Positions 9,229 to 52,177 of a stretch of 64,000 nt of DNA are shown piece by piece; position 1 is the first letter of the stretch, and each line of letters begins with the position of its first letter. Position numbers and translations under genes: made by a program. The notes beneath the pieces are model-generated. The model saw nothing but the letters and a program-made list of their open reading frames with translations. It ran no database searches and was not told where the DNA came from. Source of the stretch: Macrostomum lignano (Eukaryota); the NCBI GenBank assembly GCA_002269645.1, contig NIVC01000010.1, positions 1,798,001 to 1,862,000 on the forward strand, given 5' to 3'.

Positions 9229-11764
9229 AAAAGTGTTGAATCTAGTTCAAACTTGTGCTAAAACTTATTTTTTAAACAAATATTGTTCTTTAAAACTTTT
9301 TTTGTTTTTTAATTTTGGTTTACTTTTGATTTTAAAAACTAAAAAATTAAAAATATTTAAAATTTGCAGGCATTCAGAACTTGTTCATGATTTTTAATTG
9401 AGAATTTGAATTAAATAAAATTTTAAAGAAATTTTAAAATGACGACGACGAAGGCCTGACGACGGGTTGGCTGGATTGCTGTCTAGCCACAAAATCTTTT
9501 TGTTTAGTGCCTAGCCTAAAGGAAGCTAGGATCAAGCGCGCCATGAATTGCCAGTTATTTATTTTACGCAAAAGGTAAATTTGAATGGAAAGTGAGTTTA
9601 TGCAATTGATTACTATGGGACCTAACCGCTAACCCTGCTGCTGCTTCTGCAGCTGTGCTCTGCCTCTGCAATGAAAATCACCTTGAATACAAAGCAAATA
9701 TAATTTTTTAACTAGAAAGAGGAGTAAGTAATAATATTTTTATATCGGTGGAAGGATTGTAATATATTTATTCACAATTTAACCTTTATTGACATTGAAC
9801 TTGGACATTGGAAATGGGATAATATATAATATTAATGATTTGGCATTCCTTCAGTTTACAATCATTTTTCGACCCACATTTTGGTTCACAATCCCCATGT
9901 AATTTTTCATATAAATTATCATAGCTTGCTTGAAATAAACAGAAATTGTTACACTGAGTTTAGGCCTATTCGTTACATTAGCGGGTTAGGCCTAGAAAAA
10001 ACTGAATGGAATTAGGGAATAGCCGACAAATGGTTTCTTTTATGGCATGGCGATGACAAGGATCCTATATATCCACTTCGGTTTATGATCATTTAAATGG
10101 AAGCAATACATGTAAATGATCCTGAACCAAAGCTAGGCCTAGCATGTGTGTAAGGCCATACTAAGGCCTACTAAGGGCATTAGTGCATTAATTCAATTTC
10201 TAAAAATGAATTCAAGAAGACAATCCTATATATAGGGGTTCTAGTGAGGTTTTTGAAGTTTTATTTTCTTTTATAGTTTTTTTACATTGTTAGATAGATC
10301 TTTGTGACCAAAATCCAAAATGGCCTCACATTTTAGATTTGGCAAAGGAATAAAAACCAAAAAAGTTATGCCATATTTTACTATATATTTTTTTCGCAAT
10401 TTCCTATTGCACTTTTGTATTACAATTTGTGACCTTTTTTTGCAAAAAATACATAATTTTCGCATGTTTTTGCCTGTCATTCTTTTTTCTCTAGACTAAT
10501 TTCTAAAAGCTTGGTGTCATTTTTTGCTTTCTTTTCATACTTTATTATCTCTTCAAGCCTCTTAATCTGCTTATGATATTGTCTTGTTCAGTTAGTTGAA
10601 GTAGTGTGTCCAAGCACCCGAAATGATCTTTATTGGTTAATTTTTTTTTCTTCAATAATGATTTTGAAAATGAAATATATTTTGCTTGTATATGTATTAA
10701 ACAATGTATTAGGCCTAAACAGAGTTGGCATTGCTGACCAGGCGAATGCCAGGGGTCGCTTGTTGGGATTGTCTTATGCTGGGGTCAAAAAAATCCAGTG
10801 ACTTTCCAACAGAAGCCTCCATTGTTGACCCCCATACAACATAAATGAAGAATTTGCATCCACTATTGCATTGCCATCATCATGTCAAAAATGTGAGCAG
10901 AAAATTAGAATTTTTTGTTTCTCATCTGAAAAATAGCTGCTAAATTCCATTCATCTACTATAAGTAGACACAAATATACCACAACAAAATATAATTTTTT
11001 GACCTTGCGGAAAGCTTTCCTTGAAAGTGTCTCTCTCCCAGTCATTTAGAATCGCATGATGTATACAAAAAAGCTATAAAATCCTTGTAGCTGCATCATT
11101 CCTTTGACTGCAGCAGATTTTTCATTTGGCAATGACAATTTATATGTATTGATAGAAAATTTATATCTTCCTAATGGAAGGTGCTAAGGAGATGTGGTTT
11201 TTTGCTTTTGGTAATTTGAAGCCCCTATTTATGAAATCCAACGGCTTTTCCAGGTAGCTCTTATAATAACTCAATGAAAAGAAAGAATAAAATTTTACAT
11301 TGTCTGTATAGGGGCATTAAGAAAAAAGTTTTATCCCAATTTCCCCAAAATTCATCTTTTAGATCATTTTCTGTGTATAGTCAATGGCCATTTTGTTATA
11401 TTCATTCATTTAAAAGCTCAAATTTCAATTTGTATTTCATATCCCCATTTTTCACAAAGGACACATTTCTGTTTTTTTTTGTTTTTTGCTTCAACTTTCG
11501 GTGCCTATAACTTCTATTGTAGGGCATATTTCACATTGTTTCAATACTCATAGGAAAGTATATTTTGTATACTTTCAGACATATATTTTGGATTTACGAT
11601 TTACTTACTTATATCATTTAGTGCCTCTTTGATCCAATTTGCATAACACACATTTGTACATTTTTTTTCATTTTTGGGACACATTGTACGAAGCTCATTG
11701 GAACCCCTACTATATATCCACTTTGTTTTTTGATCATATAAATGGAAGATAGACCCTAGGCCTA

Positions 11765-12973: not shown

Positions 12974-13730
12974 ACAAGCTGTTGAAACCCGCGGATTTTG
13001 AACCCGGGGAATTCCAATACCCGGAACTACTTTTACACGTATTCTGAAATCTAAGGCCATACACAAACAAAAACTTGTTAATAGTTAGTAGGATAGAGGT
13101 AGACATAAAATGGAGCACATTCGTGTAAAATTAGGGTTTGAGGCAAACGTTGAAATTGTTGGCTGGGGTACTGCGCAGAATGTCAGGCAATGTCTGTCTG
13201 ACTCTAAAACATGTATTGGCAAACTCTGGCCAATATGTACTCTCCCTATGTCCCTTGGATCCTTTAAAATTTCTATCGTCTCTTCTGTTTCCTTTCTTCT
13301 CTCTTGTCCCTCGTCTCTCCTCTCTCTTCTCTCCTCTCTTCTCTCATATCTTCCCTCATCTCTTCCCTATTCTTTTCTCTCTCCTCTCCTCTCTCCTTTC
13401 TACTTTTTGTTTTCTCTCTGCTCTCCTCTCTCCTCTCTCCCATCTTCTTTCGTATCCTCCCTCATCTTTCTTCTCTTTCATATCTCTTATCTCATCTCAA
13501 TTCCCTCTTCTTTTCTCTCTCCTCTCCTCCCTCCTCTCTACTTTTTCGTTTTCGTTTTCGTTTCTCGTTGACCCTCCTCTCCTCTCTCCTCTCTCCCCCT
13601 CTTCTCTCTCGTCTCTTCCTTCTCCTCTCTATTCTTTTCTCTCATCTCTTAACTCTCTCCTCTACTCTCTCATCTCTCCTTTCTATTCTTTTATCTTTTC
13701 TCTCTTATCTCTTCTCATTTCTCTCTGCTC

Positions 13731-13789
<59 letters not shown>

Positions 13790-15845
13790 CCTCTCTCTCT
13801 CTCTTATCTCTCCTCTCCCATCTCTCTTCTCCTCTCTACTCTCTCCCCTCTTCATTCTCCTATTTCCTCTTCTCTCTCCCTGTCTCTCCTCTCTCCTCTA
13901 GTCTCTGTAATCTCTTCTCTCTTCTCTCTCCTCTGTTCTCTCTACTCTCCCATCTCTCGTCTGTTCACCCTCATCTCTGCTCTCTCATCTGTCATCTTTA
14001 CTCTCTTATACGTTCTCTCACTTATCTCCTCTGTACTCTTCTCTTTCACCTCTTCTGACTCCTCTCTTTCCTTTCTCCTTTCTCCTCTCCTCTTCTCTTC
14101 TCTTCCCTCTTCTATACTGTCTCCCTCTCTTGTCTTCTCTCGTCTCTCTGCACTCTCCTCTCACCTTTTTCATCTCTCATCTTTACTCTCTCATCTCTCC
14201 TTTAATCTGTCTCATCTCTACAATCTCATCTCTCCTTTCTCCCCTCTTCTTACACCCCTCTCTTATCTCTATCTCTTCTCTTCTCACTCCTCTCTCCCCC
14301 TCTTATCTCCTCTCTTCTTTATCCTTTCTACTCTCTCCTCTCCTCTCCTCCTCTTGACCCTCTGTCATCTTCTTTCTGCTCTCTCATCTCTACTCTCTTC
14401 TCACTCTTCTCTACTTTCCTCTCATCGATCCTCTGTCTCATCTCTCCCCTCTTCTTACATTTACTCTTTCCTCTCCCTCCTTTCTCCCCTCCTCTCGCTT
14501 CTTCCTCCCTTCTTCTCTGCTCTCTCCTCACCACTTGTCTCTCCTCTTATCTTCCATGTTTTCTCTTATCCCCCTCTCGCCTCTCCTCTCTTCTAATACT
14601 AATTAGTCTATTCCTTCTCCTTTCCACTCTCATCTGGCCCGCACATAAGCTGGATTCTTTATCTGGCTTTTGAAGTAAAAGTCTGCCGATCCCTGCTTCG
14701 AAAGCCAGTTTGTGGGACGTACTACTCTCATGGTTGTTCTCATGCTTTGATCACGTCATCTTTCTTGCCAATTTGCAGCCCTGAAAGGAATTTGTGTATC
14801 TTCAGCTCCACTGCAGTCTGCATCAGTCTAACAACCAAGGAAATACGCATTTCTTAGGAGGCCATTTAAATTTTAGAGTACTTTTAAGAGAAACTTAAAA
14901 TTTCCATGGTGTGCGGTGTGCCTAATTTAGTAGGGTTGTATTTCATTGCATCGCATCGCCTTTTCATAAATCTTTCGCTTTTACAAACCATGCTGGATTC
15001 CCTCGATTTGCCAATTGCCAATTGCCATCCACTGTTAAACTGCTGCAGAGTTTGGAGGGCAGTGGTTAGAATTTCTCACTAAACTGTTATGGCTAAACGA
15101 AGCCTCTCCACTCTCGGGGTGCAGAGAAGGCTATAAAAAAAGTTATTCCAAAACACTGTACATTTGCTATGTACATTCAGTCCTATCGCCTGACCCTTCG
15201 TCTGGCTCTGGGGGAATGAGTGAGTGAGTGGCACAAACAACAGAAAAAGCAGACAAACTTCACATGCTTACAGTTTCTTTTTCGGTTGAGTTACAGAGTT
15301 GAAACTTTACATTTAGACAGAGAATGGGTCAATGAAGAATTGTGTCAAGTTTGAAGTCAATCGCTTTACGTGAAGCAAACTTATGGCAGCTGAAAGTTAG
15401 TCAATTTTGAAACCCTTTTACACATCTGGGCCCAGATCGGGTAAGAGAGGCAGGCGGGCGGAGGTTGGGGTGGTTGCTACGCTGAAAAAACAGCCTAACT
15501 TTAAAAGCGCACAGCACCGCTCAGGATTAACTTTGATACTCGAAATTTTACACGATTGTGCCAAAATAGTTTAAGATTATCTGTGTCAAATTTGAAGAGA
15601 ATCGGTAGAAGTGGAGCGGCGCTATGGAGGATTTAGTGAAAAAATCGCGCATTTTGAGCAGTTTTTTGTACTTTTAGGTAGGAAGACTTGAGTCTAGGAA
15701 ATTAAAAGGTAGCCTAAGACATTCTCCGTAGTAAGTTTAGGGTGGGTGTAAAGTTTGGTGTCATTTGGTTGAGCGGTTTGGGAGTCCATAGCGAAGTAAT
15801 TTGTCCACAGACAGACAGAGTTTTGATTTTTATAGGTAGAGATAG
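12974..15845 (+). mobile_element. Non-autonomous Helitron/HINE-like element, copy 2
   Basis: Same termini and internal modules as 5633-9228; CT-rich core ~13270-14625 with a pure (CT)n run at ~13735-13785; lacks the foldback insertion. Confidence 0.6.
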
Positions 15846-19625: not shown

Positions 19626-20324
19626 TTCTTTTTTTACTACCCTGATCCTATCAAATCAATAGCTTCGATATGCTAATATGCTTTGCCAAAGAACCTCCAT
19701 ATCTGTAACATCCTATAGCTGTATCCATAGCTACAATAGAACTCTAGTACCTATGGTTTATGCACATAATATAAAACAAAAAATTCTTGACTAATAGCTA
19801 TGTTTGTTGAAAATCTAGAACTATCTATCAAAATAATTTTAGCATAAGTAGAATATTTTATTCTAGATTTAAATAACCTTGAAAGTTTCATATCTCAAGT
19901 CTTAGCCTTAGGGGAGAGAGGCAAGTTGGGCAACTAACCTTTTCTTCCTTTGGTTAGTCCACTGGGAAGAATCTATTCAAATTCCTCCAGTAGACTTTGC
20001 ATTACCCTAGAGTTAATATAATCTAGAAAGTTAGAATGGCAATAATATTTTAGAAACAAAAACAAGCATAGACAATGTAGTTGATGCCTTAATTTTAGCT
20101 CATAAAATAGTATCTACAAAGTCACACGGTGGTAGAGTACTGTTTGCTGTGGCCTATTTTGCATTGATAAAGACCAATATATAATGCAATATCATGTAAA
20201 ACTTAGCTATCTTCTAAATTTGATGTTTACACTGTAAATAACAAACTTTTGCAGTTGATTCTTTAGCTTATTAAAAGCATAGAAATTGTGTATTGTTAAA
20301 AAGACAGGATAAACTAATACTGAA

Positions 20325-20580
20325 ATGCAAGGCGGTGGTGTGATAAGCATCACGGTTAAGTGCGACTTGGCCTACAGTCAAGCTGCTGGTCGGGTGCACC
20401 TGCGTCTGGGCGTTGATCGAACTCTCGACTCTCTTCTTGACGAATTCTGCTCTCATATGAGAATTCGAAGATTGCCAACTTTGTCACTGCGCAACGATTT
20501 GCATAGCGAGCTGGCATTGGACTTGACATTGGCTGCTGCTGGCCTGTCTGATGGCGACGTTATCTATGCCTTCGACTCTG
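20325..20580 (+). CDS. Exon encoding a ubiquitin-like (beta-grasp, SUMO/Rad60-SLD-like) domain
   Basis: ISITVK..RVHLRL..TLDSLLDEFCSHM..LSLRN..LDLTLAAAGLSDGDVIYAF matches the Ubl pattern (L.D..TL...G..DGD.I); strong donor G|GTGAGG at 20580/20581; no terminal diglycine. Confidence 0.7.
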
Positions 20581-23500
20581 GTGAGGGTTCAGTTAGTTTG
20601 CAGGCAGCTTCAAGCACTTTGGCTTTAGTTAGAGGCCCATTATTACTGCCCATTCCGCCGACTACCCTGAGCATGCACACTAGTGCGCGCGGATACGTAC
20701 GCAGCCATACGCACAGGCACACACTCACACAGGAGTGTACAGCGGCCCTAACTTTATTTATCGTCAGCCATGTACTTGGGGGTTGGCCCTCAGGGCCGTT
20801 AATTTTCAGCCCCGCTGGGAAAAAATTGCAGCGACGGCACTGTGACGACAAGCGACGACAGGCTAGAGACGATTTAGTCTTGAAGTCTTGATTAGCGCCT
20901 GAATATCTGAATATCTGTCATACGAGATTCATCTTTGTTTATCCCGTCTCATTGCTAAACTGCAGATCCGCCGCCTCCGCCCCCCGAACCGGTGCTGGCC
21001 AGGGACTCGGCTTCTAATTGGTGGATCTTAGCTGCGGCCGCACTGGCTATTGGCCTGTTCGGTGCTGCCGCCATCATTACAATGTTTGTCATTGGCAATC
21101 AGCCTATTGATGCGGTGAGATTAAAAACCAGGGCCACTGGTCCCCTGTTTAGGTTTGGAATGTCACTAATTCCATGTGATTCATTTTGGGATGTCTGATT
21201 CCAGATGACTCGGTTTGGGATGTCACTGATTCCAGCTGCTTTTTGTTTGGGATGTCACTGATTCCAGATGCTTCGATTTGGGATGTCACTGATCTCAGAT
21301 GCTTCAGTTTGGAATGTCACCGATTCCAGATATTTGTGTTTAAAATGTCACTGATTCCAGATATTTGTGTTTAGAATGTCACTGATTCCAGATATTTGTG
21401 TTTAGAATGTCACTGATTCCAGATATTTGCGTGTTTAGAATGTCACCGATTCGAGATATTTGTGTTTAAAATGTCACTGATTCCAGATATTTGTGTTTAG
21501 AATGTCACTGATTCCAGAAATTTTGTGTTTAGAATGTCACTGATTCCAGATCTTTGCGTGTTTAGAATGTCACTGATTCCAGATATTTGTGTTTAGAATG
21601 TCACTGATTCCAGATCTTCGTGTTGTTAGAATGTCACTGATTCCAGATCTTCGTGTTGTTAGAATGTTACTGATACTGTAATCCTAAACTTGTCACTGGA
21701 TAATTATCTCGTCACCGCTCGCACCCACAGTACGGAGTCATTATCGACGCCGGGTCCAGCTCATCCAAAGTGTACATCTACACCTGGCCAGCGTCCAAGA
21801 CAAATGGAAATGGCGTAGTGTCTCAACGCGCAGTAGCCAATAATTCTTGTACGTTTTGTTTATAAAATATTTATAAACTGGAAACCAGTTAAGATTAGAT
21901 ACTAAAAATTGTCGAATTATTTTTTGCAGCTGCTCCAATAGAAAGTTCTCAAGGCATTAACCAGATTGAATGGTCGCTAAGATCGTTGGATTCCGTGGTG
22001 CCAGAGGATCGGAAAGCCAAATCTGAACTGTTCCTTGGCGCCACTGCCGGCATGCGAATGTACAGGTGAATGGCATTGTCCGCTGCCAACTGTCATCATG
22101 GGTTCGAGCCCTAGATACTTGATATCTATGGCCAGCCTTGTAGAATTTAGACATGTTTCCTGTCAGTGTCCCATATCTTCAGTTGCTGGGCCTGTTTCCC
22201 AGATCCTCAGTTGCTGGGCCAGCCTCCAAATTCTCAGTTACTGGGCCAGCCTCCAGATTCTCAGTTGCTGTGCCAGCCTCCAGATTCTCAGTTGCTGTGC
22301 CAGCCTCCCAGATCCTCAGTTGCTGTGCCAGCCTCCAGATTCTCAGTTGCTGGGCCAGCCTCCAGATCCTCAGTTGCTGGGCCAGCCTCCTAAGATCCTC
22401 AGTTGCTAGGCCAGCCTCCCAGATCCTCAGTTGCTGGGCCAGCCTCCTAGATCCTCAGTTGCTGGGCCAGCCTCCTAAGATCCTCAGTTGCTGGGCCAGC
22501 CTCCCAGATCCTCAGTTGCTGGGCCAGCCTCCCAAGATCCTCAGTTGCTTGGCCAGCCTCCCAAGATCCTCAGTTGCTGGGCCAGCCTCCCAGATCCTCG
22601 GTTGCTGGGCCAGCCTCCCAAGATCCTCAGTTGCTGGGCCAGCCTCCCAAGATCCTCAGTTGCTGGGCCAGCCTCCCAGATCCTCGGTTGCTGGGCCAGC
22701 CTCCCAGATCCTCAGTTGCTGGGCCAGCCTCCCAAGATCTTCAGTTGCTGGGCCAGCCTCCCAGATCCTCAGTTGCTGGGCCAGCCTCCCAAGATCCTCA
22801 GTTGCTGGGCCAGCCTCCCAGATCCTCAGTTGCTGAGCCTCGATCCCAGATCCTCAGTTCCTGGGCCAGCCTCAATACCAGATTCTCAGTTGCTGCGCAT
22901 GGCGCCATCATTCTAAGAATTCCACTTGACACACAAAAAACCCGCAGCGCCGTCAACAGCACAGCAGCAGAGTTAGTATTGAACGGAGCTCGGCAGGTAC
23001 TAACCAGCAAGTTCGCTTACAAAGTATCCAACGCTACAGGACAGATTCGTATAATCACCGGAGCAGAAGAAGCAGTTGGCGCCTGGATTAGCGTTAATTA
23101 TCTCAAGGTATGCAATATCGCTATTCATTGCCGATATGTATCGAAAAATCACTTTTCTACTGACTCAATTGTAGAACAGTTTCGGAGATTTCGCCTCTTC
23201 CTCGCTGACCTCGCGAGTGGCCAGATCTGTTGGCTACCGTCAGCTAGCTAACGATTTTGACACCTTTGGCAGCTTGGACCTCGGCGGCGCCAGCACTCAG
23301 ATTGCATTCGTTCCGGCTGCCAATTTCACTCCAGCTGATTCGGTATCATCAAAGACTCACATTGTACCGTTGAGTTTGTACGGCAAAGTGTACAATGTGT
23401 ACGCTTATAGCTTCCTGTGCTACGGTAAAGCTGAAGCTGAAAACAGGATGCTGGCTAGCGTTATTGCTAATGCTGGCTATAATAGTTCGGCTGTCATAAA

Positions 23501-26500
23501 TACGCCTTGTTGGCAGGTGAGCATTTTTAGGGGTCTGCTTCTAAAGCATTAAATGTTTTGTAGCCCTGAAGTATCGGATGTTTTATAGCCCTGAAGTATC
23601 GGGGGGTTTTGTAGCCCTGGAGTATCGGGGGGTTTTGTAGCCCTGAAGTATCGGATGTTTTATAGCCCTGAAGTATCGGATGTTTTATAGCCCTGAAGTA
23701 TCGGATGTTTTTTAGCCCTGGAGTATCGGATGTTTTATAGCCCTGGAGTATCGGATGTTTTATAGCCCTGGAGTATCGGGGGGTTTTGTAGCCCTGAAGT
23801 ATCGGATGTTTTATAGCCCTGGAGTATCGGGGGGTTTTGTAGCCCTGAAGTATCGGATGTTTTATAGCCCTGGAGTATCGGATGTTTTATAGCCCTGGAG
23901 TATCGGATGTTTTATAGCCCTGGAGTATCGGATGTTTTGTAGCCCTGGAGTATCGGGGGGTTTTGTAGCCCTGAAGTATCGGATGTTTTATAGCCCTGGA
24001 GTATCGGATGTTTTTTAGCCCTGGAGTATCGGGGGGTTTTGTAGCCCTGAAGTATCGGATGTTTTATAGCCCTGGAGTATCGGGGGGTTTTGTAGCCCTG
24101 AAGTATCGGAGGCTTCAGTAGCCTGAAGTATCGGCGGTTTCAGTAGCCTGAAGTATCGGCGGTTTCAGTAGCCTGAAGTATTGGAAGTTTCAGTAGCCTG
24201 AAGTATCGGCGGTTTCAGTAGCCTGAAGTATCGGCGGTTTCAGTAGCCTGAAGTATCGGCGGTTTCAGTAGCCTGAAGTATCGGCGGTTTCAGTAGCCTG
24301 AAGTATCGGCGGTTTCAGTAGCCTGAAGTATCGGCGGTTTCAGTAGCCTGAAGTATCGGCGGTTTCAGTAGCCTGAAGTATCGGCGGTTTCAGTAGCCTG
24401 AAGTATCGGCGGTTTCAGTAGCCTGAAGTATCGGAAGTTTCAGTAGCCTGAAGTATCGGAGGTTTCAGTAGCCTGAAGTATCGGCGGTTTCAGTAGCCTG
24501 AAGTATTGGAAGTTTCAGAACCAATAAGTGTTTATAGAAGTTTTTATGGCCCTTAATTATAGATGGTTTCAGCGCTCTGAAGTATCAGATCAGAGTGATG
24601 ATCTTGCACCAATCCGCCATACTACACAGGCTGACTACACAGCAACTGTCCGAGCAACTGACGTATTTCAACGTCCCTGCTCTGATCGCTGGCAGCTGCA
24701 GCCTTCGCCGCCTCCGCCATCAGTTCTCGCTAGACTCAATTTCACAATTCGGGGCACTGGCAGCTATGAGAACTGCTCAAAATTAGTTGGTAAATTTTTT
24801 AACGCCAGTTGCGATCAGAGCACGTGCTCGTTTAATGGCGTTTTCCAACCGGCGCCCGCTAGCAAGTTTGTGGCATTCTCCGGCTTCTACTATGTGGCGT
24901 CATTTTTCAACGCTAGTAATATTGGATCCGACCGAATGCAGTTTGTTAATGCTGTGAGAGCCTTCTGCCAGAAGAGATATCTCGCATCCATTGGCTATAG
25001 CGATAGCTTCCTGAGATGGTACTGCTTTGATGGAGTGTACGTTCTGTCGTTATTGAATGCCTATGGATTCAATGAGACTAACTGGGGTCTGCTTGAGTTT
25101 GAGGACTCGGTATGTTTGGGGGGTTTTATACATATTTTTTTCTGGGATAATGGGATTTTAATAATAGGATTACCTTGAGTCGAATAAGAGAGTTTATGAG
25201 GATTTTAATAATGAGTCCACCTTGGGTCTAATGGGAAATTGAGGATTTAAATTATGAGTCCATCTTAAGTCGAATGGGAGAAAGGGTCCGGGGATTTTAA
25301 TAATGAGTCCACCTTGAGTCGAATGGGAGAATGAAGATTTTAATAATGAGTCCACCTTCCTTGAGTCGATTGGGAGAAAGAGGATTTTGATAATGAGTCC
25401 ACTTTCCTTGAGTCGATTGGGAGAAAGAGGATTTTGATAATGAGTCCACCTTGAGTCGAATGGGGGAATGAGGATTTTAATAATGAGTCCACCTTGAGTC
25501 GAATGGGAGAATGGGGATTTTAATAATGAGTCCACCTTGAGTCGATTGGGAGAATGAGGATTTTAATAATGAGTCCACCTTGAGTCGATTGGGAGAAAGA
25601 GGATTTTAATAATGAGTCCACTTTCCTTGAGTCGATTGGGAGAATGAGGATTTTAATAATGAGTCCACCTTGAGTCGAATGGGAAAATGAGGATTTTAAT
25701 AATGAGTCCACCTTGAGTCGAATGGGAAAATGAGGATTTTAATAATGAGTCCACCTTGAGTCGAATGGGGGAATGAGGATTTTAATAATGAGTCCACCTT
25801 GAGTCGAATGGGGGAATGGGGAATTTAATAATGAGTCCACCTTGAGTCGAATGGGAGAATGAGGATTTTAATAATGAGTCCACCTTCCTTGAGTCGATTG
25901 GGAGAAAGAGGATTTTGATAATGAGTCCACTTTCCTTGAGTCGATTGGGAGAAAGAGGATTTTGATAATGAGTCCACTTTCCTTGAGTCGATTGGGAGAA
26001 AGAGGATTTTGATAATGAGTCCACCTTGAGTCGAATGGGGGAATGAGGATTTTAATAATGAGTCCACCTTGAGTCGAATGGGAGAATGGGGATTTTAATA
26101 ATGAGTCCACCTTGAGTCGAATGGGAAAATGAGGATTTTGATAATGAGTCCACTTTCCTTGAGTCGATTGGGAGAAAGAGGATTTTGATAATGAGTCCAC
26201 CTTGAGTCGAATGGGGGAATGAGGATTTTAATAATGAGTCCACCTTGAGTCGAATGGGAAAATGAGGATTTTAATAATGAGTCCACCTTGAGTCGATTGG
26301 GAGAAAGAGGATTTTAATAATGAGTCCACCTTGAGTTGATTGGGAGAATGAGGATTTTAATAATGAGTCCACCTTGAGTCGATTGGGAGAAAGAGGATTT
26401 TAATAATGAGTCCACCTTAAGTCGAATGGGAAAATGAGGATTTTAATAATGAGTCCACCTTGAGTCGAATGGGAAAATGAGGATTTTAATAATGAGTCCA

Positions 26501-28347
26501 CCTTGAGTCGAATGGGGGAATGAGGATTTTAATAATGAGTCCACCTTGAGTCGAATGGGGGAATGAGGATTTTAATAATGAGTCCACCTTGAGTCGAATG
26601 GGGGAATGAGGATTTTAATAATGAGTCCACCTTGAGTCGAATGGGGGAATGAGGATTTTAATAATGAGTCCACATTGAGTCGAATGGGGGAATGAGGATT
26701 TTAATAATGAGTCCACCTTGAGTCGAATGGGAAAATGAGGATTTTAATAATGAGTCCACCTTGAGTCGAATGGGGGAATGAGGATTTTAATAATAAGTCC
26801 ACCTTGAGTCGAATGGGGGAATGAGGATTTTAATAATGAGTCCACCTTGAGTCGAATGGGAGAATGAGGATTTTAATAATGAGTCCACCTTCCTTGAGTC
26901 GATTGGGAGAAAGAGGATTTTAATAATGAGTCCACATTGAGTCGAATGGGGGAATGAGGATTTTAATAATGAGTCCACCTTGAGTCGAATGGGAGAATGA
27001 GGATTTTAATAATGAGTCCACCTTCCTTGAGTCGATTGGGAGAAAGAGGATTTTAATAATGAGTCCACCTTGAGTCGAATGGGAGAATGAAGATTTTAAT
27101 AATGAGTCCACCTTGAGTCGAATGGGAGAATGAGGATTTTAATAATGAGTCCACCTTGAGTCGAATGGGGGAATGAGAATTTTAATAATGAGTCCACCTT
27201 GAGTCGAATGGGGGAATGAGGATTTTAATAATGAGTCCACATTGAGTCGAATGGGGGAATGAGGATTTTAATAATGAGTCCACCTTGAGTCGAATGGGAG
27301 AATGAGGATTTTAATAATGAGTCCACCTTCCTTGAGTCGATTGGGAGAAAGAGGATTTTAATAATGAGTCCACATTGAGTCGAATGGGGGAATGAGGATT
27401 TTAATAATGAGTCCACCTTGAGTCGAATGGGAAAATGAGAATTTTAATAATGAGTCCACCTTAAGTCGATTGGGAGAATGAGGATTTTAATAATGAGTCC
27501 ACCTTGAGTCGAGTAGGAGAATGAAGATTTTAATAATGAGTCCACCTTGAGTCGATTGGGAGAATGAGGATTTTAATAATGAGCCCACATTGAGTCGAAT
27601 GGGAGAATGAAGATTTTAATAATGAGTCCACCTTGAGTCGATTGGGAGAATGAGGATTTTAATAATGAGCCCACATTGAGTCGATTGGGAGAATGAGGAT
27701 TTTAATAATGAGCCCACATTGAGTCGAATGGGAGAATGAGGATTTTAATAATGAGTCCACCTTGAGTCGAGTAGGAGAATGAAGATTTTAATAATGAGTC
27801 CACCTTGAGTCGATTGGGAGAATGAGGATTTTAATAATGAGCCCACATTGAGTCGAATGGGAGAATGAAGATTTTAATAATGAGTCCACCTTAAGCTTCT
27901 GTAGTTGAGGTAGCAGCACTTTAAATAACTATTCTAGCAAACTTTTTTACACAAAAATTTAATGCATGTTGCTATTTGTAATAATTAATTTTAGATTACT
28001 GTCAATCATTCTACAAGTGCAGGCGAACAGGTAAGGCTGGTACAAAAATTATAATTTGTGGACTTTATTGTTTCTTTATAATGTTTAATTTTAACAAAAG
28101 TAAACTGGTGGTTAAAATGTCTCAAATCTTTTGTCAGGCCACGTCAGCTAACAAAGTGGGCTGGTCGCTTGGCTACACGATACTTCAGTCCGGTCTGATA
28201 CCCGCCGAATCGCCTCTGATGTCGCTCTCGCTCCCCATGTTCATCATTCTATTAATAATGTTCGCCGCCTTCTTGGGGTTCGCCGTGCTGTTTGGCTGTT
28301 TGGGTAGGCGAGTTAAACAGCGAGCTCAAGGCTATGTGACTATCTGA
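20325..28347 (+). CDS. ENTPD: CD39/GDA1-family ecto-NTPDase (apyrase) with an N-terminal ubiquitin-like domain, two TM helices and a C-terminal GYVTI motif; 616 aa (628 with the optional exon)
   Basis: Exons 20325-20580, 20966-21114, 21731-21848, 21930-22065, 22948-23107, 23175-23516, 24630-25109, [27995-28030], 28138-28347; all GT-AG and phase-compatible; 1851 nt without the optional exon. Apyrase motifs: YGVIIDAGSS (ACR1), LGATAGMR (ACR2), GAEEAVGAWISVNYL (ACR3), GSLDLGGASTQ (ACR4), VGWSLGY (ACR5); also CSFNGVFQP and FVAFSGFYY of the CD39 clade. In-frame TAA at 20310 precedes the ATG. Linkage of exon 1 is less certain than that of the catalytic exons. Confidence 0.9.
21150..21672 (+). repeat. 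31 bp minisatellite in NTPDase intron 2
   Basis: Unit GTTTAGAATGTCACTGATTCCAGATATTTGT; degenerate at the 5' edge. Confidence 0.9.
22175..22895 (+). repeat. 28-29 bp minisatellite in NTPDase intron 4
   Basis: Unit CCAGATCCTCAGTTGCTGGGCCAGCCTC. Confidence 0.95.
23555..24520 (+). repeat. 25 bp minisatellite with two sub-arrays in NTPDase intron 6
   Basis: TAGCCCTGAAGTATCGGATGTTTTA up to ~24110, then CAGTAGCCTGAAGTATCGGCGGTTT. Confidence 0.95.
25185..27893 (+). repeat. 43 bp minisatellite (47 bp variant) in NTPDase intron 7
   Basis: Unit GAGTCCACCTTGAGTCGAATGGGAGAATGAGGATTTTAATAAT; variant units carry an extra TTCC. Confidence 0.95.
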
Positions 28348-28434: not shown

Positions 28435-29612
28435 ACCTGAATAGCCCTGAAGTAATCCCTAGCCCTGACTTATCCCACCTGAATAGCCCTGAAGTATCTC
28501 ACCTGAATAGCCCTGAAGTATCCATAGCCCTGAAGTATCCCTAGCCCTGACTTATCCCACCTGAATAGCCCTGAAGTATCTCATCTAAATAGCCCTGAAT
28601 TCTCCCACCTGAATAGCCCTGACTTAACCCACCTGAATAGCCCTGAAGTATCCCATCTGAATAGCCCTGACTTATCCCACCTGAATAGCCCTGAAGTATC
28701 TCATCTAAATAGCCCTGAATTATCCCACCTGAATAGCCCTGACTTAACCCACCTGAATAGCCCTGAAGTATCCCATCTGAATATCCCTGAAGTATCCCAC
28801 CTGAATAGCCCTGAAGTATTCCATCTGAATAGCCCTGAAGTATCCCTAGCCCTGAAGTATCCCCCTGAATAGCCCTGAAGTATCCCACCTGAATAGCCCT
28901 GACTTATCCCACCTGAATAGCCCTGAAGTATCCCACCTGAATAGCCCTGAAGTATCCCACCTGAATAGCCCTGAAGTATTCCATCTGAATAGCCCTGAAG
29001 TATTCCATCTGAATAGCCCTGAAGTATCCCACCTGAATAGCCCTGACGTATCCCACCTGAATAGCCCTGAAGTATTCCATCTGAATAGCCCTGAAGTATC
29101 CCACCTGAATATCCCTGAAGTATCCCACCTGAATAGCCCTGAAGTATTCCATCTGAATAGCCCTGAAGTATTCCATCTGAATAGCCCTGAAGTATCCCAT
29201 CTGAATAGCCCTGAAGTATCCCACCTGAATAGCCCTGAAGTATCCCACCTGAATAGCCCTGAAGTATCCCATCTGAATAGCCCTGAAGTATCCCATCTGA
29301 ATAGCCCTGAAGTATCCCACCTGAATAGCCCTGAAGTATCCCATCTGAATAGCCCTGAAGTGTCCCATCTGAATAGCCCTGAAGTATCCCATCTGAATAG
29401 CCCTGAAGTGTCCCATCTGAATAGCCCTGAAGTATCCCACCTAAATAGCCCTGAAGTATCCCACCTGAATAGCCCTGAAGTATCCCATCTGAATAGCCCT
29501 GAAGTATCCCACCTAAATAGCCCTGAAGTATCCCACCTAAATAGCCCTGAAGTATCCCATCTGAATAGCCCTGAAGTGTCCCACCTAAATAGCCCTGAAG
29601 TATCCCACCTGT
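28435..29612 (+). repeat. 24 bp minisatellite just 3' of the NTPDase stop
   Basis: Unit ATAGCCCTGAAGTATCCCACCTGA. Confidence 0.95.
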
Positions 29613-29867
29613 ATTAAGTTTTTATAATCACTTTGCTTTGCGGATTTTAATTTTCTGTAATTTAGTTTCATACTTAAATTTATTCTTTTTCAAAATAAGT
29701 ATTCTGCGCTGGTTACACTAATTGCATGCGATACCAACCAAACTTTCAGATTATCAGTTCCGCAATTAAGAATATTATATTGGCGCCAAACTTTTTTAAC
29801 GGTAACCACTTCTTTTCTTCAATAATCTGTAAGATTTAAACCATCAACATCCAATAATGTTTAAAAT

Positions 29868-30900
29868 TGCCCTAGAATCATGTCTTGAATCGCCCTAGAA
29901 TCATGTCTTGAATCGCCTTACAATCATGTCTAGAATCGCCATAAAATCATGTCTAGAATCGCCCTACAATCATGTCTAGAATCGCCATACAATCATGTCT
30001 AGAATCGCCCTACAATCATGTCTAGAATCGCCATACAATCATGTCTAGAATCGCCATACAATCATGTCTAGAATCGCCATAAAATCATAATCGCCCTACA
30101 ATCTTGTCTAGAATCGCCATACAATCATGTCTTGAATCGCCATACAATCATAATCGCCCTACAATCTTGTCTAGAATCGCCCTGCAATCATGTCTTCAAT
30201 CGCCCTACAATCATGTCTAGAATCGCCCTACAATCATGTCTTGAATCGCCCTGCAATCATGTCTTGAATCGCCCTGCAATCATGTCTTGAATCGCCCTGC
30301 AATCATGTCTTGAATCGCCCTGCAATCATGTCTTGAATCGCCCTGCAATCATGTCTTGAATCACCCTACAATCATGTCTAGAATCGCCCTACAATCTTGT
30401 CTTAAATCACCCTGCAATCATGTCTTGAATCGCCCTGCAATCATGTCTTGAATCGCCCTGCAATCATGTCTTGAATCGCCCTGCAATCATGTCTTGAATC
30501 GCCCTGCAATCATGTCTAGAATCGCCCTACAATCATGTCTTGAATCGCCCTGCAATCATGTCTTGAATCGCCCTGCAATCATGTCTTGAATCGCCCTGCA
30601 ATCATGTCTTGAATCGCCCTGCAATCATGTCTTGAATCGCCCTGCAATCATGTCTTGAATCACCCTACAATCATGTCTAGAATCGCCCTACAATCTTGTC
30701 TGGAATAGCCCTGCAATCATGTCTTGAATCGCCATACAATCATGTCTGGAATCGCCCTACAATCATGTCTGGAATCGCCCTACAATCATGTCTTGAATCG
30801 CCCTGTAATCATGTCTTGAATCGCCCTGCAATCATGTCTTAAATCGCCCTACAATCATGTCTAGAATCGCCATACAATCATGTCTTGAATCGCCCTGTAA
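29868..30900 (+). repeat. 23 bp minisatellite
   Basis: Unit GAATCGCCCT(A/G)CAATCATGTCT(A/T). Confidence 0.95.
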
Positions 30901-31502
30901 TTCTGCCCAGAGTTGTTTTTCTACAAAAGCTCGGAAAAACATCGATTCGATTTGCGACTCTTCAAAGCTTAGTTCATAGTTTTTTCATGCTTATTTTTTA
31001 CATTCCCTTAACTTGTAAAATACTTCATTGATAATTGGCACAGTTGTCATTTTCAATATCCCATGCGCGGTCCGTTGATGATTTATTATTTAGCACACTT
31101 CTAATTATTTTTCATAAATGATATTTTTTTAAGTTTTCGATTGTTATGCCATTTGCGAGTCTCATCCTTTTGTTTTTTACTTGTGGACCGTTTCTATTTT
31201 TCATTGATCAATTTGCTCTAAAATGTGAAAATCTAATTGATAGGTCATCATCACTAATATAAATATACAGAATGTACCTAAAATAATTGTATTGCTGAAT
31301 CATTTGATTTTCCTAGTAAGTTATTTGATCATTTTATTTAAAAGTTAGCTTAAAACATTGGCCCCTAAAATTTATTTACCAAAAATTTTGAATCATACTA
31401 AAATTGTCCATTTATACTGTGCACTTTAGAATTACTCTTCAAACCCGTTTCTATTAAAAACAGGCCTTCAAATCCGTAGCCAATGAAAATCCTTGAGACC
31501 CC

Positions 31503-33414
31503 TTGAGAATCGGCCTTCAAATCCAAACCACCTTAAGAATCGGCCTTCAAATCCAGACCACCTTAAAAATCGACCTTCAAATCCGGACCACCCTAAGAAT
31601 TGACCTTCAAATCCAGACAACCTTAAGAATCGGCCTTCAAATCCAGACCACCTTAAAAATCGACCTTCAAATCCGGACCACCCTAAGAATCGACCTTCAA
31701 ATCCAGACAACCTTAAGAATCAGCCTTCGAATCCAGACTTCCTTAACGATCGGCCTTTAAATCCAGACACCTTAAGAATCAGCCTTCAAATCCAGACATT
31801 AAGAATCGGCCTTCAAATCCGGACCACCTTAGGAATCGACCTTCAAATCCAGACCACCTTAAGAATCGACCTTCAAATCCGGACCACCCTAAGAATCGGC
31901 CTTCAAATCCAGATAACCTTAAGAATCGACCTTCAAATCCAGATAACCTTAAGAATCAGCCTTCGAATCCAAACTTCCTTAACGATCGGCCTTTAAATCC
32001 AGACACCTTAAGAATCAGCCTTCAAATCCAGACATTAAGAATCGGCCTTCAAATCCGGACCACCTTAGGAATCGACCTTCAAATCCAGACCACCTTAAGA
32101 ATCGACCTTCAAATCCGGACCACCCTAAGAATCGGCCTTCAAATCCAGATAACCTTAAGAATCGACCTTCAAATCCAGATAACCTTAAGAATCAGCCTTC
32201 GAATCCAAACTTCCTTAACGATCGGCCTTTAAATCCAGACACCTTAAGAATCAGCCTTCAAATCCAGACTATTAAGAATCGGCCTTCAAATCCGGACCAC
32301 CTTAAGAATCGACCTTCAAATCCAGATAACCTTAAGAATCGACCTTCAAATCCAGATAACCTTAAGAATCAGCCTTCGAATCCAAACTTCCTTAACGATC
32401 GGCCTTTAAATCCAGACACCTTAAGAATCAGCCTTCAAATCCAGACTATTAAGAATCGGCCTTCAAATCCGGACCCCCTTAAGAATCGACCTTCAAATCC
32501 AGATAACCTTAAGAATCGACCTTCAAATCCAGATAACCTTAAGAATCAGCCTTCGAATCCAAACTTCCTTAACGATCGGCCTTTAAATCCAGACACCTTA
32601 AGAATCAGCCTTCAAATCCAGACTATTAAGAATCGGCCTTCAAATCCGGACCACCTTAAGAATCGGCCTTCAAATCCAGACCACCTTAAAAATCGGCCTT
32701 CAAATCCAGACCACCTTAAGAATAGGCCTTAAATCCAGACCACCTTAAGAATCGGCCTTCAAATCCAGACCACCTTAAGAATCGACCTTCAAATCCAGAT
32801 AACCTTAAGAATCGGCCTTCAAATCCAGACCACCTTAAGAATCGGCCTTCAAATCCAGACCACCTTAAGAATCGGCCTTAAATCCAGACCACCTTAAGAA
32901 TCGGCCTTCAAATCCAGACCACCTTAAGAATCGGCCTTAAATCCAGACCACCTTAAGAATCGGCCTTCAAATCCAGACCACCTTAAGAATCGGCCTTAAA
33001 TCCAGACCACCTTAAGAATCGACCTTCAAATCCAGACCACCTTAAGAATCGGCCTTCAAATCCAGACCACCTTAAGAATCGGCCTTAAATCCAGACCACC
33101 TTAAGAATCGGCCTTAAAACCAGACCACCTTAAGAATCGGCCTTCAAATCCAGACCACCTTAAAAATCGGCCTTCAAATCCAGACCACCTTAAGAATCGG
33201 CCTTCAAATCCAGACCACCTTAAGAATCGGCCTTAAATCCAGACCACCTTAAGAATCGGCCTTAAATCCAGACCACCTTAAGAATCGACCTTCAAATCCA
33301 GACCACCTTAAGAATCGACCTTCAAATCCAGACCACCTTAAGAATCGGCCTTAAATCCAGACCACCTTAAGAATCGGCCTTCAAATCCAGACCCCTCGAA
33401 AATCGGCCTTCAAA
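31503..33414 (+). repeat. 30 bp minisatellite with higher-order repeats, directly upstream of cactin
   Basis: Unit AAGAATCGGCCTTCAAATCCAGACCACCTT. Confidence 0.95.
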
Positions 33415-33500
33415 AGCAGATCCATTATGAAGACAAAGCGATTTTTTAAATAAAAAAACTGTAACCAACTTTTTAATACTTTCTGGAAACGAAATCAAAG

Positions 33501-36500
33501 CATCATCAGCATTATCGCGACAGAGATCGCGTGGACAGAGACAGAGAGAGGGATAAAACTAGAGACAGAGATCGTGACAGACAAAGCGGCAGGCGTCGCG
33601 AAGATCGTCGCGAAGATCGAAAGCATCACCGCCATGCCGATGAGGTAGAGAAGCACAGAAAATCGAGACACAGACGGAAGTCCTCCAGCAGCAGCAGCAG
33701 TTCGTCCTCGTCAGATGATTCTCCAGCCAGACAAAAATCTGAAAAACAGTCCAGCGGCGCCTCTATTGAAGAGCGTCGTCGGGTGAAAGCGCTGCTCAAA
33801 GCTGCCGAGACTCCCGAGCAGAAGCGGGCCCGTCGGTTGGCTAAGAAGGCGGCTAAGTCGGAACGACGGCGTCGGGAACTGGGCTGGGAGGGCGACTACA
33901 CGGATAGAGATAATCCGTTTGGCGACGAGAAGCTAACGCAGACTTTCGTTTGGCATAAGAAACTGCAACGCGAGGGCGGCACTATGGCCGACGTGGAGAG
34001 AAAAGCGGCTGAGAATCGGGCTGAGCTCGAAAAGGTTTTGTTTTGGGTTCATTGTTTAAGTCATTGTTTGGTTATAAGTCATAATTCTAATTCAAAATTT
34101 TAGTCATTGACGTCATAGATCAGTCATTGAAGTCATAGATCAGTCATAGATCAGTCATAGATCAGTCATTGAAGTCATTGATCAGTCATTGAAGTCATAG
34201 ATCAGTCATTGAAGTCATAGATCAGTCATTGAAGTCATAGATCAGTCATTGAAGTCATTGATCAGTCATTGAAGTCATTGATCAGTCATTGAAGTCATAG
34301 ATCAGTCATTGAAGTCATTGATCAGTCATTGAAGTCATTGATCAGTCATTGAAGTCATAGATCAGTCATTGAAGTCATTGATCGGTCATTGATCAGTCAT
34401 TGAAATCATAGATCAGTCATAGATCAGTCATTGATGTCATAGATCAGTCATTGAAGTCATTGATCGGTCATTGATCAGTCATTGAAATCATAGATCGGTC
34501 ACTGATGTGTCATCACATGCTCATTAGGATCATTGCTATAGCCTTATCCTATTCCCCAAACAAACCGCAGGTCCGCGAGCGTTGCCGTCAGAACGAGCTG
34601 GAACGCGAGGCCCGGCTGAAGGAGCAGGAGCAGGAGCAGCGCGATCGCGAGTCTGAGAACTTTCGCCAGTGGTGGCAGCAGGAGGACGCGTTCCACTTGA
34701 AGCAGGCGCGGGCCAGATCGGCCATCCGCATAGCCGAAGGTCGCGCCAAGCCTATCGACCTGCTGGGCAGGTATGCCGAAGCTTTGCAAAGAATCTCTGG
34801 TATTAAAATTAAACGCGATGACGGGGCGGACGACAATGATGACGAATTTGATGAAGACGAGAGTCTGGCTTTCTTAGACGCCCATTCGCCGGACGCCCTG
34901 CTCACCGGCTTGAGCGTTGACGATCTCGAGGATTTAAAAGTCGATATCGGCGTCTATCAGAAATTGGAACGGCAGAGCGGCTTAACCGAAGGCGCCTGTC
35001 GGGACAGCGAGACTTTCTGGAGCTGCGTAGCTCTGCTAGTTCAGCACGCTCTGGATAGCAAGACTGCACCGGCTGCCAGCTCCGCCACGGCTGCCGTTGC
35101 TGACAGAATCGACGCCGTCATCAGGGGCAAGTCGGCCAGCCAGTTGGCCGCTCTGGAAGACTCCGTGTCCGCCAGAATCTGCGCGGCCGGACCGGGCACC
35201 GATCTGGCCTACTGGGAGGAGATGCTGGACAAAGTTAAAGTGGCCAAGGGGAAGGCTACGCTGCAGGAGTTGCATAAAGTGCTGCTGCGTAGGCGAATGC
35301 AGAGACTGCAGGTTAGTAGGTTTGATAGAATCTTCATCTTCATTTAATACCTTAACTAGCGCTAATCCCCAATCGGAAGTATCCCGCTAATCCATACCCG
35401 GAAACCCGATGAAAACTCTAGCGCTCTGGCGATTCTAGCGCTTATTTTTATGGTAGATCGTTTTCAACTGGAAATACCCCGCTGATCCTCATCAGGAAAT
35501 ACCCGGCTGATCCTCATCAGGAAATACCCGGCTGATCCTCATCAGGAAATACCCCACTGATCCTCATCAGGAAATACCCCACTGATCCTCATCAGGAAAT
35601 ACCCCACTGATCCTCATCAGGAAATACCCGGCTGATCCTCATCAGGAAATACCCCACTGATCCTCATCAGGAAATACCCCACTGATCCTCATCAGGAAAT
35701 ACCCCACTGATCCTCATCAGGAAATACCCCCATTGATCCTCATCAGAAAATACCCAGATAATCCCATCCGAAAATTCCCCCCTAATGTCCAACCGAAAAT
35801 GCCCCGCTAATCCCTATCTAAAATACCCCTCACTTTGATTATAAAATCTAAAAAATACCCCTAATCCCAGTCCAGGAGCACCCATCTATACCATTCCCGC
35901 CGTCAAAACACTCTAGGAGCGTCAGTCGGCCGACCAGGGAGCGGAAGTCGACGACCCGGAAGTGGCAGCGGCGTCGGCCACGGCAGCGACGGCAACCAGC
36001 AGCGCCGCCTCCGAGGAAGGCGGCGGCGACACCGCCGAGTCAGCCGATGACGACGAGGCCGAGCAGCAGAGGCAGCAACAGCAAAAGCAACAGCAGCAGC
36101 AGCAGCAGGCTCTTGATGCGTACGATTCTGGTCGATATTCGCCGGCAAAACTCGACCCGGACACGGTCGCCGGTCAGATAGTGATCAACTGGAGCGAAGA
36201 GTCGGTCAGGCTGGAGCATCTCCGACGTCAGGCTGGCGACGCGGCAGCGCCCGAGCCGGAAGAGAAAACCGAAGAGATTGCGGTGAAAACTCCCGGCCTG
36301 GCGGCCTGGTCAGACCGGCTGAAGCCAAAGAAGCCGCGGTATTTTAATCGGGTTAATACCGGCTACAATTGGGGCGCTTATAATCGGACGCATTTCGATT
36401 CGGACAATCCGCCGCCGAAGATTGTGCAGGTGAGAGCGGAAACTAATTTAAATTTGTGTTTATTTTCGTTTTGATTAAAATCCTACTGGTTGGCAAACTT

Positions 36501-49352: not shown

Positions 49353-49681
49353 ATCAAGCCAACATCTTGCATCCTTGTAAAGTTTTTCACTGAAGCGTTT
49401 ACTGTTGGGGAGGCACAGCTTCAAACGGAATTATGTTCGCGTTTTAAGAGCGACTCAACATCGACTCAAAAGAAACCGAAGGCTTTATAAAATTACTTCG
49501 GTAGAAGCTTCAGCTTCTTTAGTCATTTTCCTGCAATTAAGAAAATTTCTACAACTAATGCCAGAAGAAAATCTAGGCTAAAAGATGCTTTTGTAAATAA
49601 AAGGTTATTAGTCTTAAAAAAACCTTCTTTGATGCACTCTTCAGAGTTTTCGCTAAGTTTGCTCGTATTACCGTCTCTACC

Positions 49682-52019: not shown

Positions 52020-52177
52020 GTAGTCACGCTACACTTTCACCACAGCAATCATCCCAGCAACAAGGAATCCTTAGTTCGGCATGGCTGAGCAAAGTGCACA
52101 GAACAAGAGCCATTCGCAAAGAGCAGATATCGGATTGCTCTTTGAGATAAAATCAAAGTCACGTGATGTTGACGGCT

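Follow-up and report, generated by a model that had tools for sequence, protein, structure and literature searches.

In a 64,000-nucleotide stretch of the Macrostomum lignano contig NIVC01000010.1 (assembly GCA_002269645.1; positions 1,798,001 to 1,862,000 of the forward strand; hereafter the window), I found a copy of a gene for an ecto-nucleoside triphosphate diphosphohydrolase (NTPDase) of the CD39 type. Very probably, exon 1 of this gene codes for a ubiquitin-like domain (Ubl) that is integral and non-conjugatable and lies on the predicted cytosolic side of the first transmembrane helix (TM1). It is not a one-off fusion; the Ubl-NTPDase is an old form of this enzyme for which no published description was found. 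The DNA of the window is genomic and comes from this free-living flatworm, and its top protein matches are the M. lignano entries PAA81568.1 and PAA48824.1. The gene has nine exons at 20325-28347 on the plus strand, all introns are GT-AG, and the unbroken open reading frame (ORF) gives a product of 628 amino acids (aa). The features of the gene model, including the apyrase conserved regions (ACRs), are as follows.

20310-20312, plus strand: in-frame TAA stop codon, 15 nucleotides (nt) 5′ of the ATG; the translation of 20265-20600 reads ...KKTG-stop-TNTEMQGGG
20325-20580, plus strand: exon 1, with the ATG, the Ubl (aa 1-85, MQGGG...VIYAFDS) and the first base of D86; donor ACTCTG/gtgagg, phase 1
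20340-20576, plus strand: beta-grasp core, aa 6-84, from AlphaFold2 and Foldseek
20581-20965, plus strand: intron 1, GT...AG, phase 1, 385 nt
20966-21114, plus strand: exon 2, whose acceptor ctgcag/AT completes GAT (D86), with the linker (aa 86-103) and TM1; donor GCG/gtgaga, phase 0
20968-20985, plus strand: six-proline (Pro6) tract, P87-P92, in the linker; predicted local distance difference test (pLDDT) score about 64
21019-21096, plus strand: TM1, W104-G129, predicted helix 104-129, hydrophobic, WWILAAAALAIGLFGAAAIITMFVIG; putative signal anchor
21731-21848, plus strand: exon 3, with ACR1 YGVIIDAGSSSSK; begins YGVIIDAGSS, with a conserved phase-0 intron ahead of YG
21930-22065, plus strand: exon 4, with ACR2 LGATAGMR
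22948-23107, plus strand: exon 5, with ACR3 IITGAEEAVGAWISVNY; acceptor picked to fit PAA48824.1
23175-23516, plus strand: exon 6, with ACR4 DLGGASTQ
24630-25109, plus strand: exon 7, C-terminal lobe of the ectodomain with conserved cysteines
27995-28030, plus strand: exon 8, a 36-nt microexon ITVNHSTSAGEQ, also in PAA48824.1 and PAA81568.1
28138-28347, plus strand: exon 9, with ACR5 VGWSLGY, the second transmembrane segment (TM2, about 28237-28305), a short cytosolic tail and the TGA at 28345-28347

The final choice of acceptors and of the microexon was set by the match to PAA81568.1 and PAA48824.1. Alternative acceptors for exon 5 (22918) and exon 7 (24573 and 24594), and a model lacking the microexon, gave ORFs of 628-646 aa and were replaced because they mismatched the GenBank proteins. 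The window locus is one of several near-identical M. lignano copies, and no entry identical to the exact 628-aa window protein was found in the protein collection searched.

Is exon 1 truly joined to the NTPDase? The initial annotation had read exon 1 as 20325-20580, ending in phase 1 and joined to the acceptor at 20966 that completes GAT. The same reading was obtained here, and the 628-aa model is identical to GenBank PAA48824.1 (BOX15_Mlig010970g1) at 625 of 628 positions with the same exon structure. The GenBank annotation of the assembly, Mlig_3_7, derives from a genome-guided RNA-seq transcriptome in which the 5′ ends of genes were cut at experimentally mapped spliced-leader (SL) sites and ORFs were called by TransDecoder (PMC5730564). 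Both PAA48824.1 and PAA81568.1 have the same exon 1 N-terminus. The start at ATG 20325, proposed from the stop codon just upstream, holds as well. The Crassostrea virginica (L002) and Owenia fusiformis (L003) genes have a phase-1 intron at the same place, in the D/E codon directly after the final strand of the Ubl, and they also share with the window gene the next intron, of phase 0 and just ahead of YG(I/V)V-DAGSS. A single Ubl-NTPDase ORF occurs in orthologues of at least six phyla, many of them on transcript-sized contigs of about 2 kb. By these sequence comparisons, the junction of exons 1 and 2 is confirmed as real and is not merely an accident of reading frame.

A further line of support for the junction comes from a second genomic copy (L001, on NIVC01000523.1). 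Its exon 1 carries four substitutions relative to the window, all of them synonymous, while its intron 1 is 638 nt long against 385 nt in the window and can be aligned only in part. The last exon of this copy (10964-11172) measures 209 nt against 210 nt in the window. PAA81568.1 ends in ...LSLPCLSFC and lacks TM2 because of this one-nucleotide difference, which reflects either a decaying duplicate or an assembly error.

Exon 1 might instead lie outside the NTPDase message, as a separate small Ubl gene or as untranslated sequence, with the message starting at exon 2, for example by SL addition at 20966. Trans-splicing affects 30-39% of M. lignano genes and operons are present (PMC5730564, PMC8629364), which makes such a start conceivable. 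The exon 1 frame also stays open through intron 1 up to 20888 (103 codons, 20581-20888), so that an unspliced transcript would give a 188-aa Ubl-only product, and short Ubl-only ORFs reading into the same intron are seen in mussel-like transcript assemblies (P0121, P0122). The M. lignano SL ends in ...TTGCATG at its 3′ end (PMC8629364). However, its AUG joined to 20966 is out of frame and meets a stop after 22 codons, and the sole in-frame ATG of exon 2 (21082, M125) lies within TM1, so that a protein begun there would be deprived of its signal anchor. The reading frame thus rules out both an exon 2 start and a start at an SL acceptor. Since the RNA-seq-derived GenBank models begin with MQGGG and continue through the NTPDase, and since the one-ORF orthologues keep the position and phase of the intron, a separate exon 1 is very improbable.

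The first 85 or so residues had been described as ubiquitin-like, with a beta-grasp fold as the expected check, and that check was run: AlphaFold2, Foldseek and the family profiles agree. With 14 or 26 orthologues as input, AlphaFold2 predicted a confident beta-grasp (mean pLDDT 84.3 and 86.5; predicted TM-score 0.71 for the domain alone), with strands at 6-13 and 22-29, a helix at 34-45, and strands at 53-56 and 79-84, in the order beta-beta-alpha-beta-beta. In the longer model, of the Ubl and TM1, a linker of lower confidence is followed by the transmembrane helix 104-129. Foldseek against the Protein Data Bank (PDB) returned 379-389 matches at E of at most 1e-3, with SUMO1/2, an archaeal ubiquitin and Rad60 SLD2 at the head of the list (probability 1.00, TMt 0.76-0.90, root-mean-square deviation (rmsd) 1.2-2.7 Å; query-normalised TM-scores 0.67-0.77). 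The highest TMt was that of Rad60 SLD2, at 0.90 with an rmsd of 1.2 Å.

The sequence profiles point to the same superfamily. Among 26 orthologue Ubls, the Pfam family YukD was matched by 23, Rad60-SLD by 19 and the ubiquitin family by 15, with best E values of 2-5e-6; YukD and Rad60-SLD belong to the ubiquitin clan. A profile of the 26 sequences against PDB sequences found di-ubiquitin (1e-7), the DSK2 Ubl (3e-5) and mono-ubiquitin (5e-4), while the best matches of a 14-sequence profile were the ELMO2 RBD (8e-5) and talin F1 (1e-4). By hhalign, aa 21-83 align to ubiquitin residues 10-70, and L55 stands opposite ubiquitin I44 in a strand register that is uncertain by one residue. Pfam PF00240 is annotated on the mussel-like Ubl-only ORF P0122. 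C42 (nt 20448-20450), where the Ubl helix ends on its C-terminal side, is shared by 23 of 26 orthologues from different phyla and aligns with a cysteine of the ELMO2 RBD and talin F1. No Gly-Gly follows the last Ubl strand in any of the 26 aligned orthologue sequences. In the window protein, that strand is followed by FDSDPPPPPPEP and then TM1, at a place where the orthologues have acidic linkers. The lack of a C-terminal Gly-Gly indicates an integral Ubl rather than a conjugatable modifier. Thus, the structural models and profiles support a ubiquitin-like beta-grasp for the N-terminal segment.

Searched with phmmer against PDB sequences, the N-terminus of the window protein returned nothing beyond polyproline or chance hits, and the window sequence on its own stays below the Pfam thresholds, which is what one would expect if the likeness were spurious and the segment were a lineage-specific cytosolic tail. 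This is hardly credible, since two independent AlphaFold2 runs gave a confident beta-grasp with hundreds of Ubl matches in Foldseek, the family profile matches ubiquitin significantly, and the hydrophobic core pattern is conserved in the cross-phylum alignment.

The remainder of the protein is a predicted enzyme: as read from its sequence, it is a cell-surface-type NTPDase with two predicted transmembrane segments, like ENTPD1/2/3/8. Pfam GDA1_CD39 (PF01150) matches residues 134-586 over profile positions 8-420 of 423 with 251 bits (cut-off 24.9; E 2.3e-74). All five ACRs can be read from the model (DAGSS, LGATAGMR, GAEEAVGAW, DLGGASTQ and VGWSLGY); in ACR3, EEG is replaced by EEA and both glutamates are retained. 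Eight of the ten conserved ectodomain cysteines are present. The absent ones are the first pair, between ACR1 and ACR2, which is also missing in the Macrostomum paralogue and in Schistosoma. The two hydrophobic segments are TM1 (104-129, a predicted helix) and a C-terminal one at about aa 593-615. All vertebrate matches among the top 120 homologues are ENTPD1, 2, 3 or 8, at 28-36% identity, and none is an ENTPD4-7. The placement of the Ubl in one ORF with this CD39-type enzyme, ahead of TM1 and so on the cytosolic side by homology, agrees with what had first been read from the DNA.

Vertebrate CD39/ENTPD1 and ENTPD2, 3 and 8 resemble the window protein in the GDA1/CD39 domain, at 33-36% identity, the five ACRs, the two terminal transmembrane segments, which are predicted in the window protein, and the eight of ten cysteines. 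They differ in having an N-terminal tail of 5-40 residues and no Ubl, while the window protein has an N-terminus of about 100 aa with a predicted folded domain. The Macrostomum protein in turn differs from the vertebrate enzymes by having neither the juxtamembrane cysteine nor the first disulfide pair. The invertebrate RefSeq proteins named ENTPD1-like or ENTPD8-like (e.g., Crassostrea virginica P0007) have the order Ubl, linker, TM1, NTPDase and TM2 in 590-640 aa, and the intron positions and phases around their linker/TM1 exon are as in the window gene. The window gene is a member of this Ubl-bearing group. Unlike it, the other members have acidic rather than polyproline linkers, and most retain the juxtamembrane cysteine and the first ectodomain disulfide. 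The literature search turned up no functional study of any of them.

The linker deserves a separate comment, since a rigid polyproline spacer had been proposed as a defining feature. This proposal was not upheld. The Pro6 tract was found only in the two M. lignano paralogues, while other phyla have short acidic linkers such as DTEDDVD and ENEDD. The polyproline spacer is thus a detail of the lineage and not a conserved design. Exon 2 reads D-PPPPPP-EPVLARDSASN-WWILAAAALAIGLFGAAAIITMFVIG-NQPIDA. The linker to TM1 is poorly conserved and spans about 18-25 residues in all orthologues; that of the window has 18 and is proline-rich. Most orthologues outside Macrostomum have a conserved C-(N/S)-x-W-W just ahead of TM1, and Macrostomum has a serine at the cysteine site. 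Mammalian ENTPD1 has a cysteine in its N-terminal tail at the position of this invertebrate juxtamembrane cysteine; the N-tail cysteine of CD39 is palmitoylated.

Is the fusion limited to Macrostomum? The initial annotation knew of no such protein, which implied that the fusion was unique. Homologue and profile searches gave a different answer. The order Ubl, TM1 and NTPDase is found in flatworm, molluscs, annelids, a brachiopod, arthropods, a starfish and an acorn worm. This spread across Bilateria in public protein data means that the fusion is not confined to the Macrostomum genome, and it is the very outcome that the initial annotation had named as refuting its novelty. The Ubl-NTPDases include those of the brachiopod Lingula anatina (XP_013419262.1), the annelids Owenia and Dimorphilus, the bivalves Crassostrea, Mytilus, Solemya, Pinctada, Mercenaria and Argopecten, the gastropods Patella and Plakobranchus, the sea spiders Pycnogonum and Nymphon, the myriapods Strigamia and Chamberlinius, the damselfly Ischnura (XP_046386805.1), the shrimp Penaeus, the sea star Asterias (XP_033632927.1) and the hemichordate Saccoglossus (XP_006815561.1). 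A second M. lignano paralogue of the same layout, 41-45% identical, even bears the UniProt name 'Ubiquitin-like domain-containing protein'. No paper describing the architecture was found in a full-text literature search, in which the coverage of subscription journals was sparse.

The first 120 homologues fall into two classes by the number of residues that precede ACR1: about 20-105 in ordinary NTPDases and 121-143 in full-length Ubl-bearing ones. An exhaustive profile search, with clusters represented at 50% identity, yielded 309 proteins, and about 25 of the top clusters are Ubl-NTPDases of about 600 aa. Profile matches of 1000-2000 aa proved to be polyubiquitin-like repeat proteins of diatoms and other protists and were set aside as unrelated to the fusion. 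A word-indexed homologue search with Ubl-only alignments found just two short mussel-like fragments, and this index seems unsuited to so short a domain. Identity in the Ubl amounts to 50% for the two Macrostomum paralogues and to 25-39% for pairs from different phyla, against 36-45% for the catalytic part in the same comparisons.

The Ubl is absent from vertebrate ENTPD1/2/3/8 and from the parasitic flatworm NTPDases among the homologues compared. In a bootstrapped neighbour-joining tree, built from the catalytic domains only with distances computed in numpy, vertebrate ENTPD1/2/3/8 form one clan (93.5% bootstrap) apart from the Ubl-bearing invertebrate sequences. Macrostomum, which has the Ubl, groups with the schistosome and cestode enzymes, which do not (97.5%), and this grouping implies a loss of the Ubl in Neodermata. 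The closest Ubl-less relatives are the tegumental NTPDase of the Schistosoma SmATPDase1 type (P0013) and its cestode homologue (P0103); they share the loss of the first cysteine pair, while their cytosolic N-terminal tail is about 45-60 aa long and holds no Ubl. The Ubl-less model of a chiton pairs with a Ubl-bearing sequence (97.5%). Since the architecture and the phase-1 intron are common to protostomes and ambulacrarian deuterostomes, the fusion would predate the bilaterian radiation. The simplest reading of these sequences is a single fusion before that radiation, after which vertebrates, Neodermata and perhaps other lineages lost the Ubl. Annotation gaps may account for some of the apparent losses.

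Some individual models are worth recording. The chiton model, from Liolophura (P0019), keeps the juxtamembrane motif GCNYWW behind an unrelated N-terminus of 24 aa, and a Ubl exon was possibly missed there. Where other proteins have the Ubl, the Ubl-less ENTPD1 of Octopus bimaculoides (P0028) begins with MGCCGSNGHCKRWW, which resembles a motif for myristoylation/palmitoylation. The Strigamia maritima model T1IIW9 (P0141; 1697 aa) comprises one Ubl-NTPDase and two further NTPDase units; most likely, annotation has fused a tandem cluster of genes into this one model.

What might such a Ubl do? The N-terminal domain would fold in the cytosol, with TM1 serving as the signal anchor, as the CD39 topology suggests. 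Having no Gly-Gly, the Ubl would work in cis, offering cytosolic partners a surface on which to dock, the most plausible being ubiquitin or Ubl receptors of the sorting or degradation machinery, and this docking might govern delivery of the ecto-enzyme to the cell surface, its internalisation or its half-life. Integral N-terminal Ubls serve as docking modules in HERPUD1, TMUB1/2, DSK2/ubiquilin, Rad23 and Ddi1/2. The DSK2 and DDI2 Ubls, which are likewise N-terminal and non-conjugatable, were among the better profile and Foldseek matches. All of these proteins act in the ubiquitin-proteasome system or in endoplasmic-reticulum-associated degradation, while the partner domain in the window is an extracellular nucleotidase, and the kinship is at the superfamily level only. 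What is common to the orthologues is a predicted folded Ubl with no Gly-Gly, its placement at the very N-terminus in every case, a short and flexible connection to TM1 and a conservation comparable to that of the enzyme. As its main role, a cis-acting docking module for ubiquitin or Ubl receptors that controls trafficking or turnover is put forward tentatively, as the likeliest of the roles considered.

Several points weigh against this reading and against the history proposed above. The docking onto ubiquitin receptors is a mechanism that I infer. It is by homology to CD39 that the Ubl would be cytosolic, with some 20 residues between it and the membrane, that the catalytic domain would be extracellular, and that the enzyme would reside in the plasma membrane. 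The window Ubl alone (residues 1-100) falls short of the Pfam limits (YukD 19 bits, cut-off 27, E 0.002; Rad60-SLD E 0.055), and it is from the family profile and the predicted structure that it is assigned. The initial annotation had suggested proteasome receptors, p97 cofactors or SIM-containing partners for the Ubl. Neither the sequence nor the fold singles out a subclass, which is ambiguous: SUMO and Rad60 are nearest by structure, and ubiquitin, DSK2, talin F1 and the ELMO RBD by profile. By sequence, the GTPase-binding beta-grasps of talin F1 and the ELMO2 RBD score about as well as mono-ubiquitin. The transcript support comes through the PAA48824.1 model and not from reads of this exact copy. 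Finally, the root of the neighbour-joining tree is a midpoint root, and the view of an ancestral fusion followed by losses draws mainly on taxonomic spread.

Given this ambiguity of subclass, the domain might be a beta-grasp of the RA/RBD or FERM-F1 type that links the ecto-enzyme to Ras/Rap/Rho signalling or to the cortical cytoskeleton. The ELMO2 RBD and talin F1 matches of the 14-sequence profile share the pattern xxxC-x3-gI-x5-Y-x-L, including the near-invariant Cys42, and Pfam RA_2 matches 2 of 26 members at 1e-4 and RBD_SIN1 1 of 26. The Ubl is adjacent to the membrane, as RA/RBD and FERM-F1 modules are, and the Macrostomum Pro6 linker weakly resembles ligands of Ena/VASP or profilin. 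However, the 26-sequence profile ranks ubiquitin and DSK2 above talin and ELMO, the top 50 Foldseek matches are SUMO, ubiquitin and Rad60 with no RA/RBD domains, and the alignment shows no conservation of the basic residues that Ras-binding interfaces typically have on strand 2 and helix 1. A link to small GTPases or to the cytoskeleton is therefore unlikely, and a specific ELMO/talin (RA/RBD) assignment, considered at one stage, was downgraded once the larger profile favoured ubiquitin and DSK2.

The Ubl might also act on the enzyme itself, by oligomerisation or by restraining TM1, and so tune catalysis from the cytosolic side with no outside partners. Cell-surface NTPDases are oligomers whose activity and substrate preference depend on the packing and mobility of TM1 and TM2, and the short linker of all orthologues would suit such an action. 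A bacterial analogue exists in EccD3, which has a cytosolic Ubl directly ahead of its transmembrane helices and appears in the Foldseek list for the model of the Ubl and TM1. Still, the variable linker is predicted to be flexible, which argues against rigid coupling, and the vertebrate and schistosome enzymes function without a Ubl. Such self-regulation appears quite improbable. EccD3 also differs in being part of the ESX/type VII secretion machine with 11 transmembrane helices. Although YukD is the most frequent Pfam match of the orthologue Ubls, the YukD/EccD matches are sub-threshold or marginal, and they most likely reflect a generic beta-grasp and not a common descent of the fusion.

The surroundings of the gene are rich in repeats. 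Introns 2, 4, 6 and 7 and the 3′ flank consist mostly of long minisatellite arrays with periods of 23-43 nt and at most 63 copies; the array in intron 7 measures 2.75 kb, and the copy number differs in the second genomic copy (L001). The other features of the window are a downstream gene and further repeated segments.

21153-21674, 22169-22895, 23555-24515, 25143-27892, 28460-29611, 29865-30896 and 31496-33414: minisatellite arrays
33477-36471, plus strand: cactin homologue gene, next downstream on the same strand as the NTPDase gene, with an RS/RD-rich N-terminus, Cactin_mid (E 1e-43) and CactinC_cactus (E 1e-15)
5756-7470 and 13092-14670, plus strand: two similar segments, each opening with a related ORF piece (DRVKHKIEYIRVQLVFEANINIVGWGAAQNVRQ and DRGRHKMEHIRVKLGFEANVEIVGWGTAQNVRQ) and running on for about 1 kb as low-complexity, Ser/Leu-rich sequence in which GC and AT skew are strongly negative; probably a repeated element
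49491-52036: GC-rich (67%) tandem-repeat block of 2.5 kb, with several open frames on both strands
56413-57416: purine-rich repeat of 1 kb, which reads (GERREKER)n

For the window itself, the outcome is a verified, transcript-consistent gene model and a lead for evolutionary and cell biology. Ecto-NTPDases end extracellular ATP and ADP signalling, and their regulation has been studied almost wholly in vertebrates, whose enzymes have tiny cytosolic parts. The Ubl has been retained for more than 500 million years on invertebrate enzymes and is conserved nearly as well as the catalytic domain, and this long retention suggests a function that the vertebrate-centred picture has missed. Tractable systems are at hand: Macrostomum offers transgenesis and RNA interference, and the oyster and sea-star proteins can be expressed heterologously. 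The finding also bears on the origin of the schistosome tegumental ATP-diphosphohydrolase, because the parasite lineage lost the Ubl. It is conceivable, though doubtful, that the Ubl of the ancestral bilaterian ecto-NTPDase placed extracellular nucleotide hydrolysis under control from inside the cell, through a ubiquitin/Ubl receptor or a small GTPase that would set its surface residence or activity, and that vertebrates and parasitic flatworms gave up this control and retained no more than an acylated stub. If this is true, it would amount to an unrecognised inside-out regulatory layer of purinergic signalling in most invertebrate phyla.

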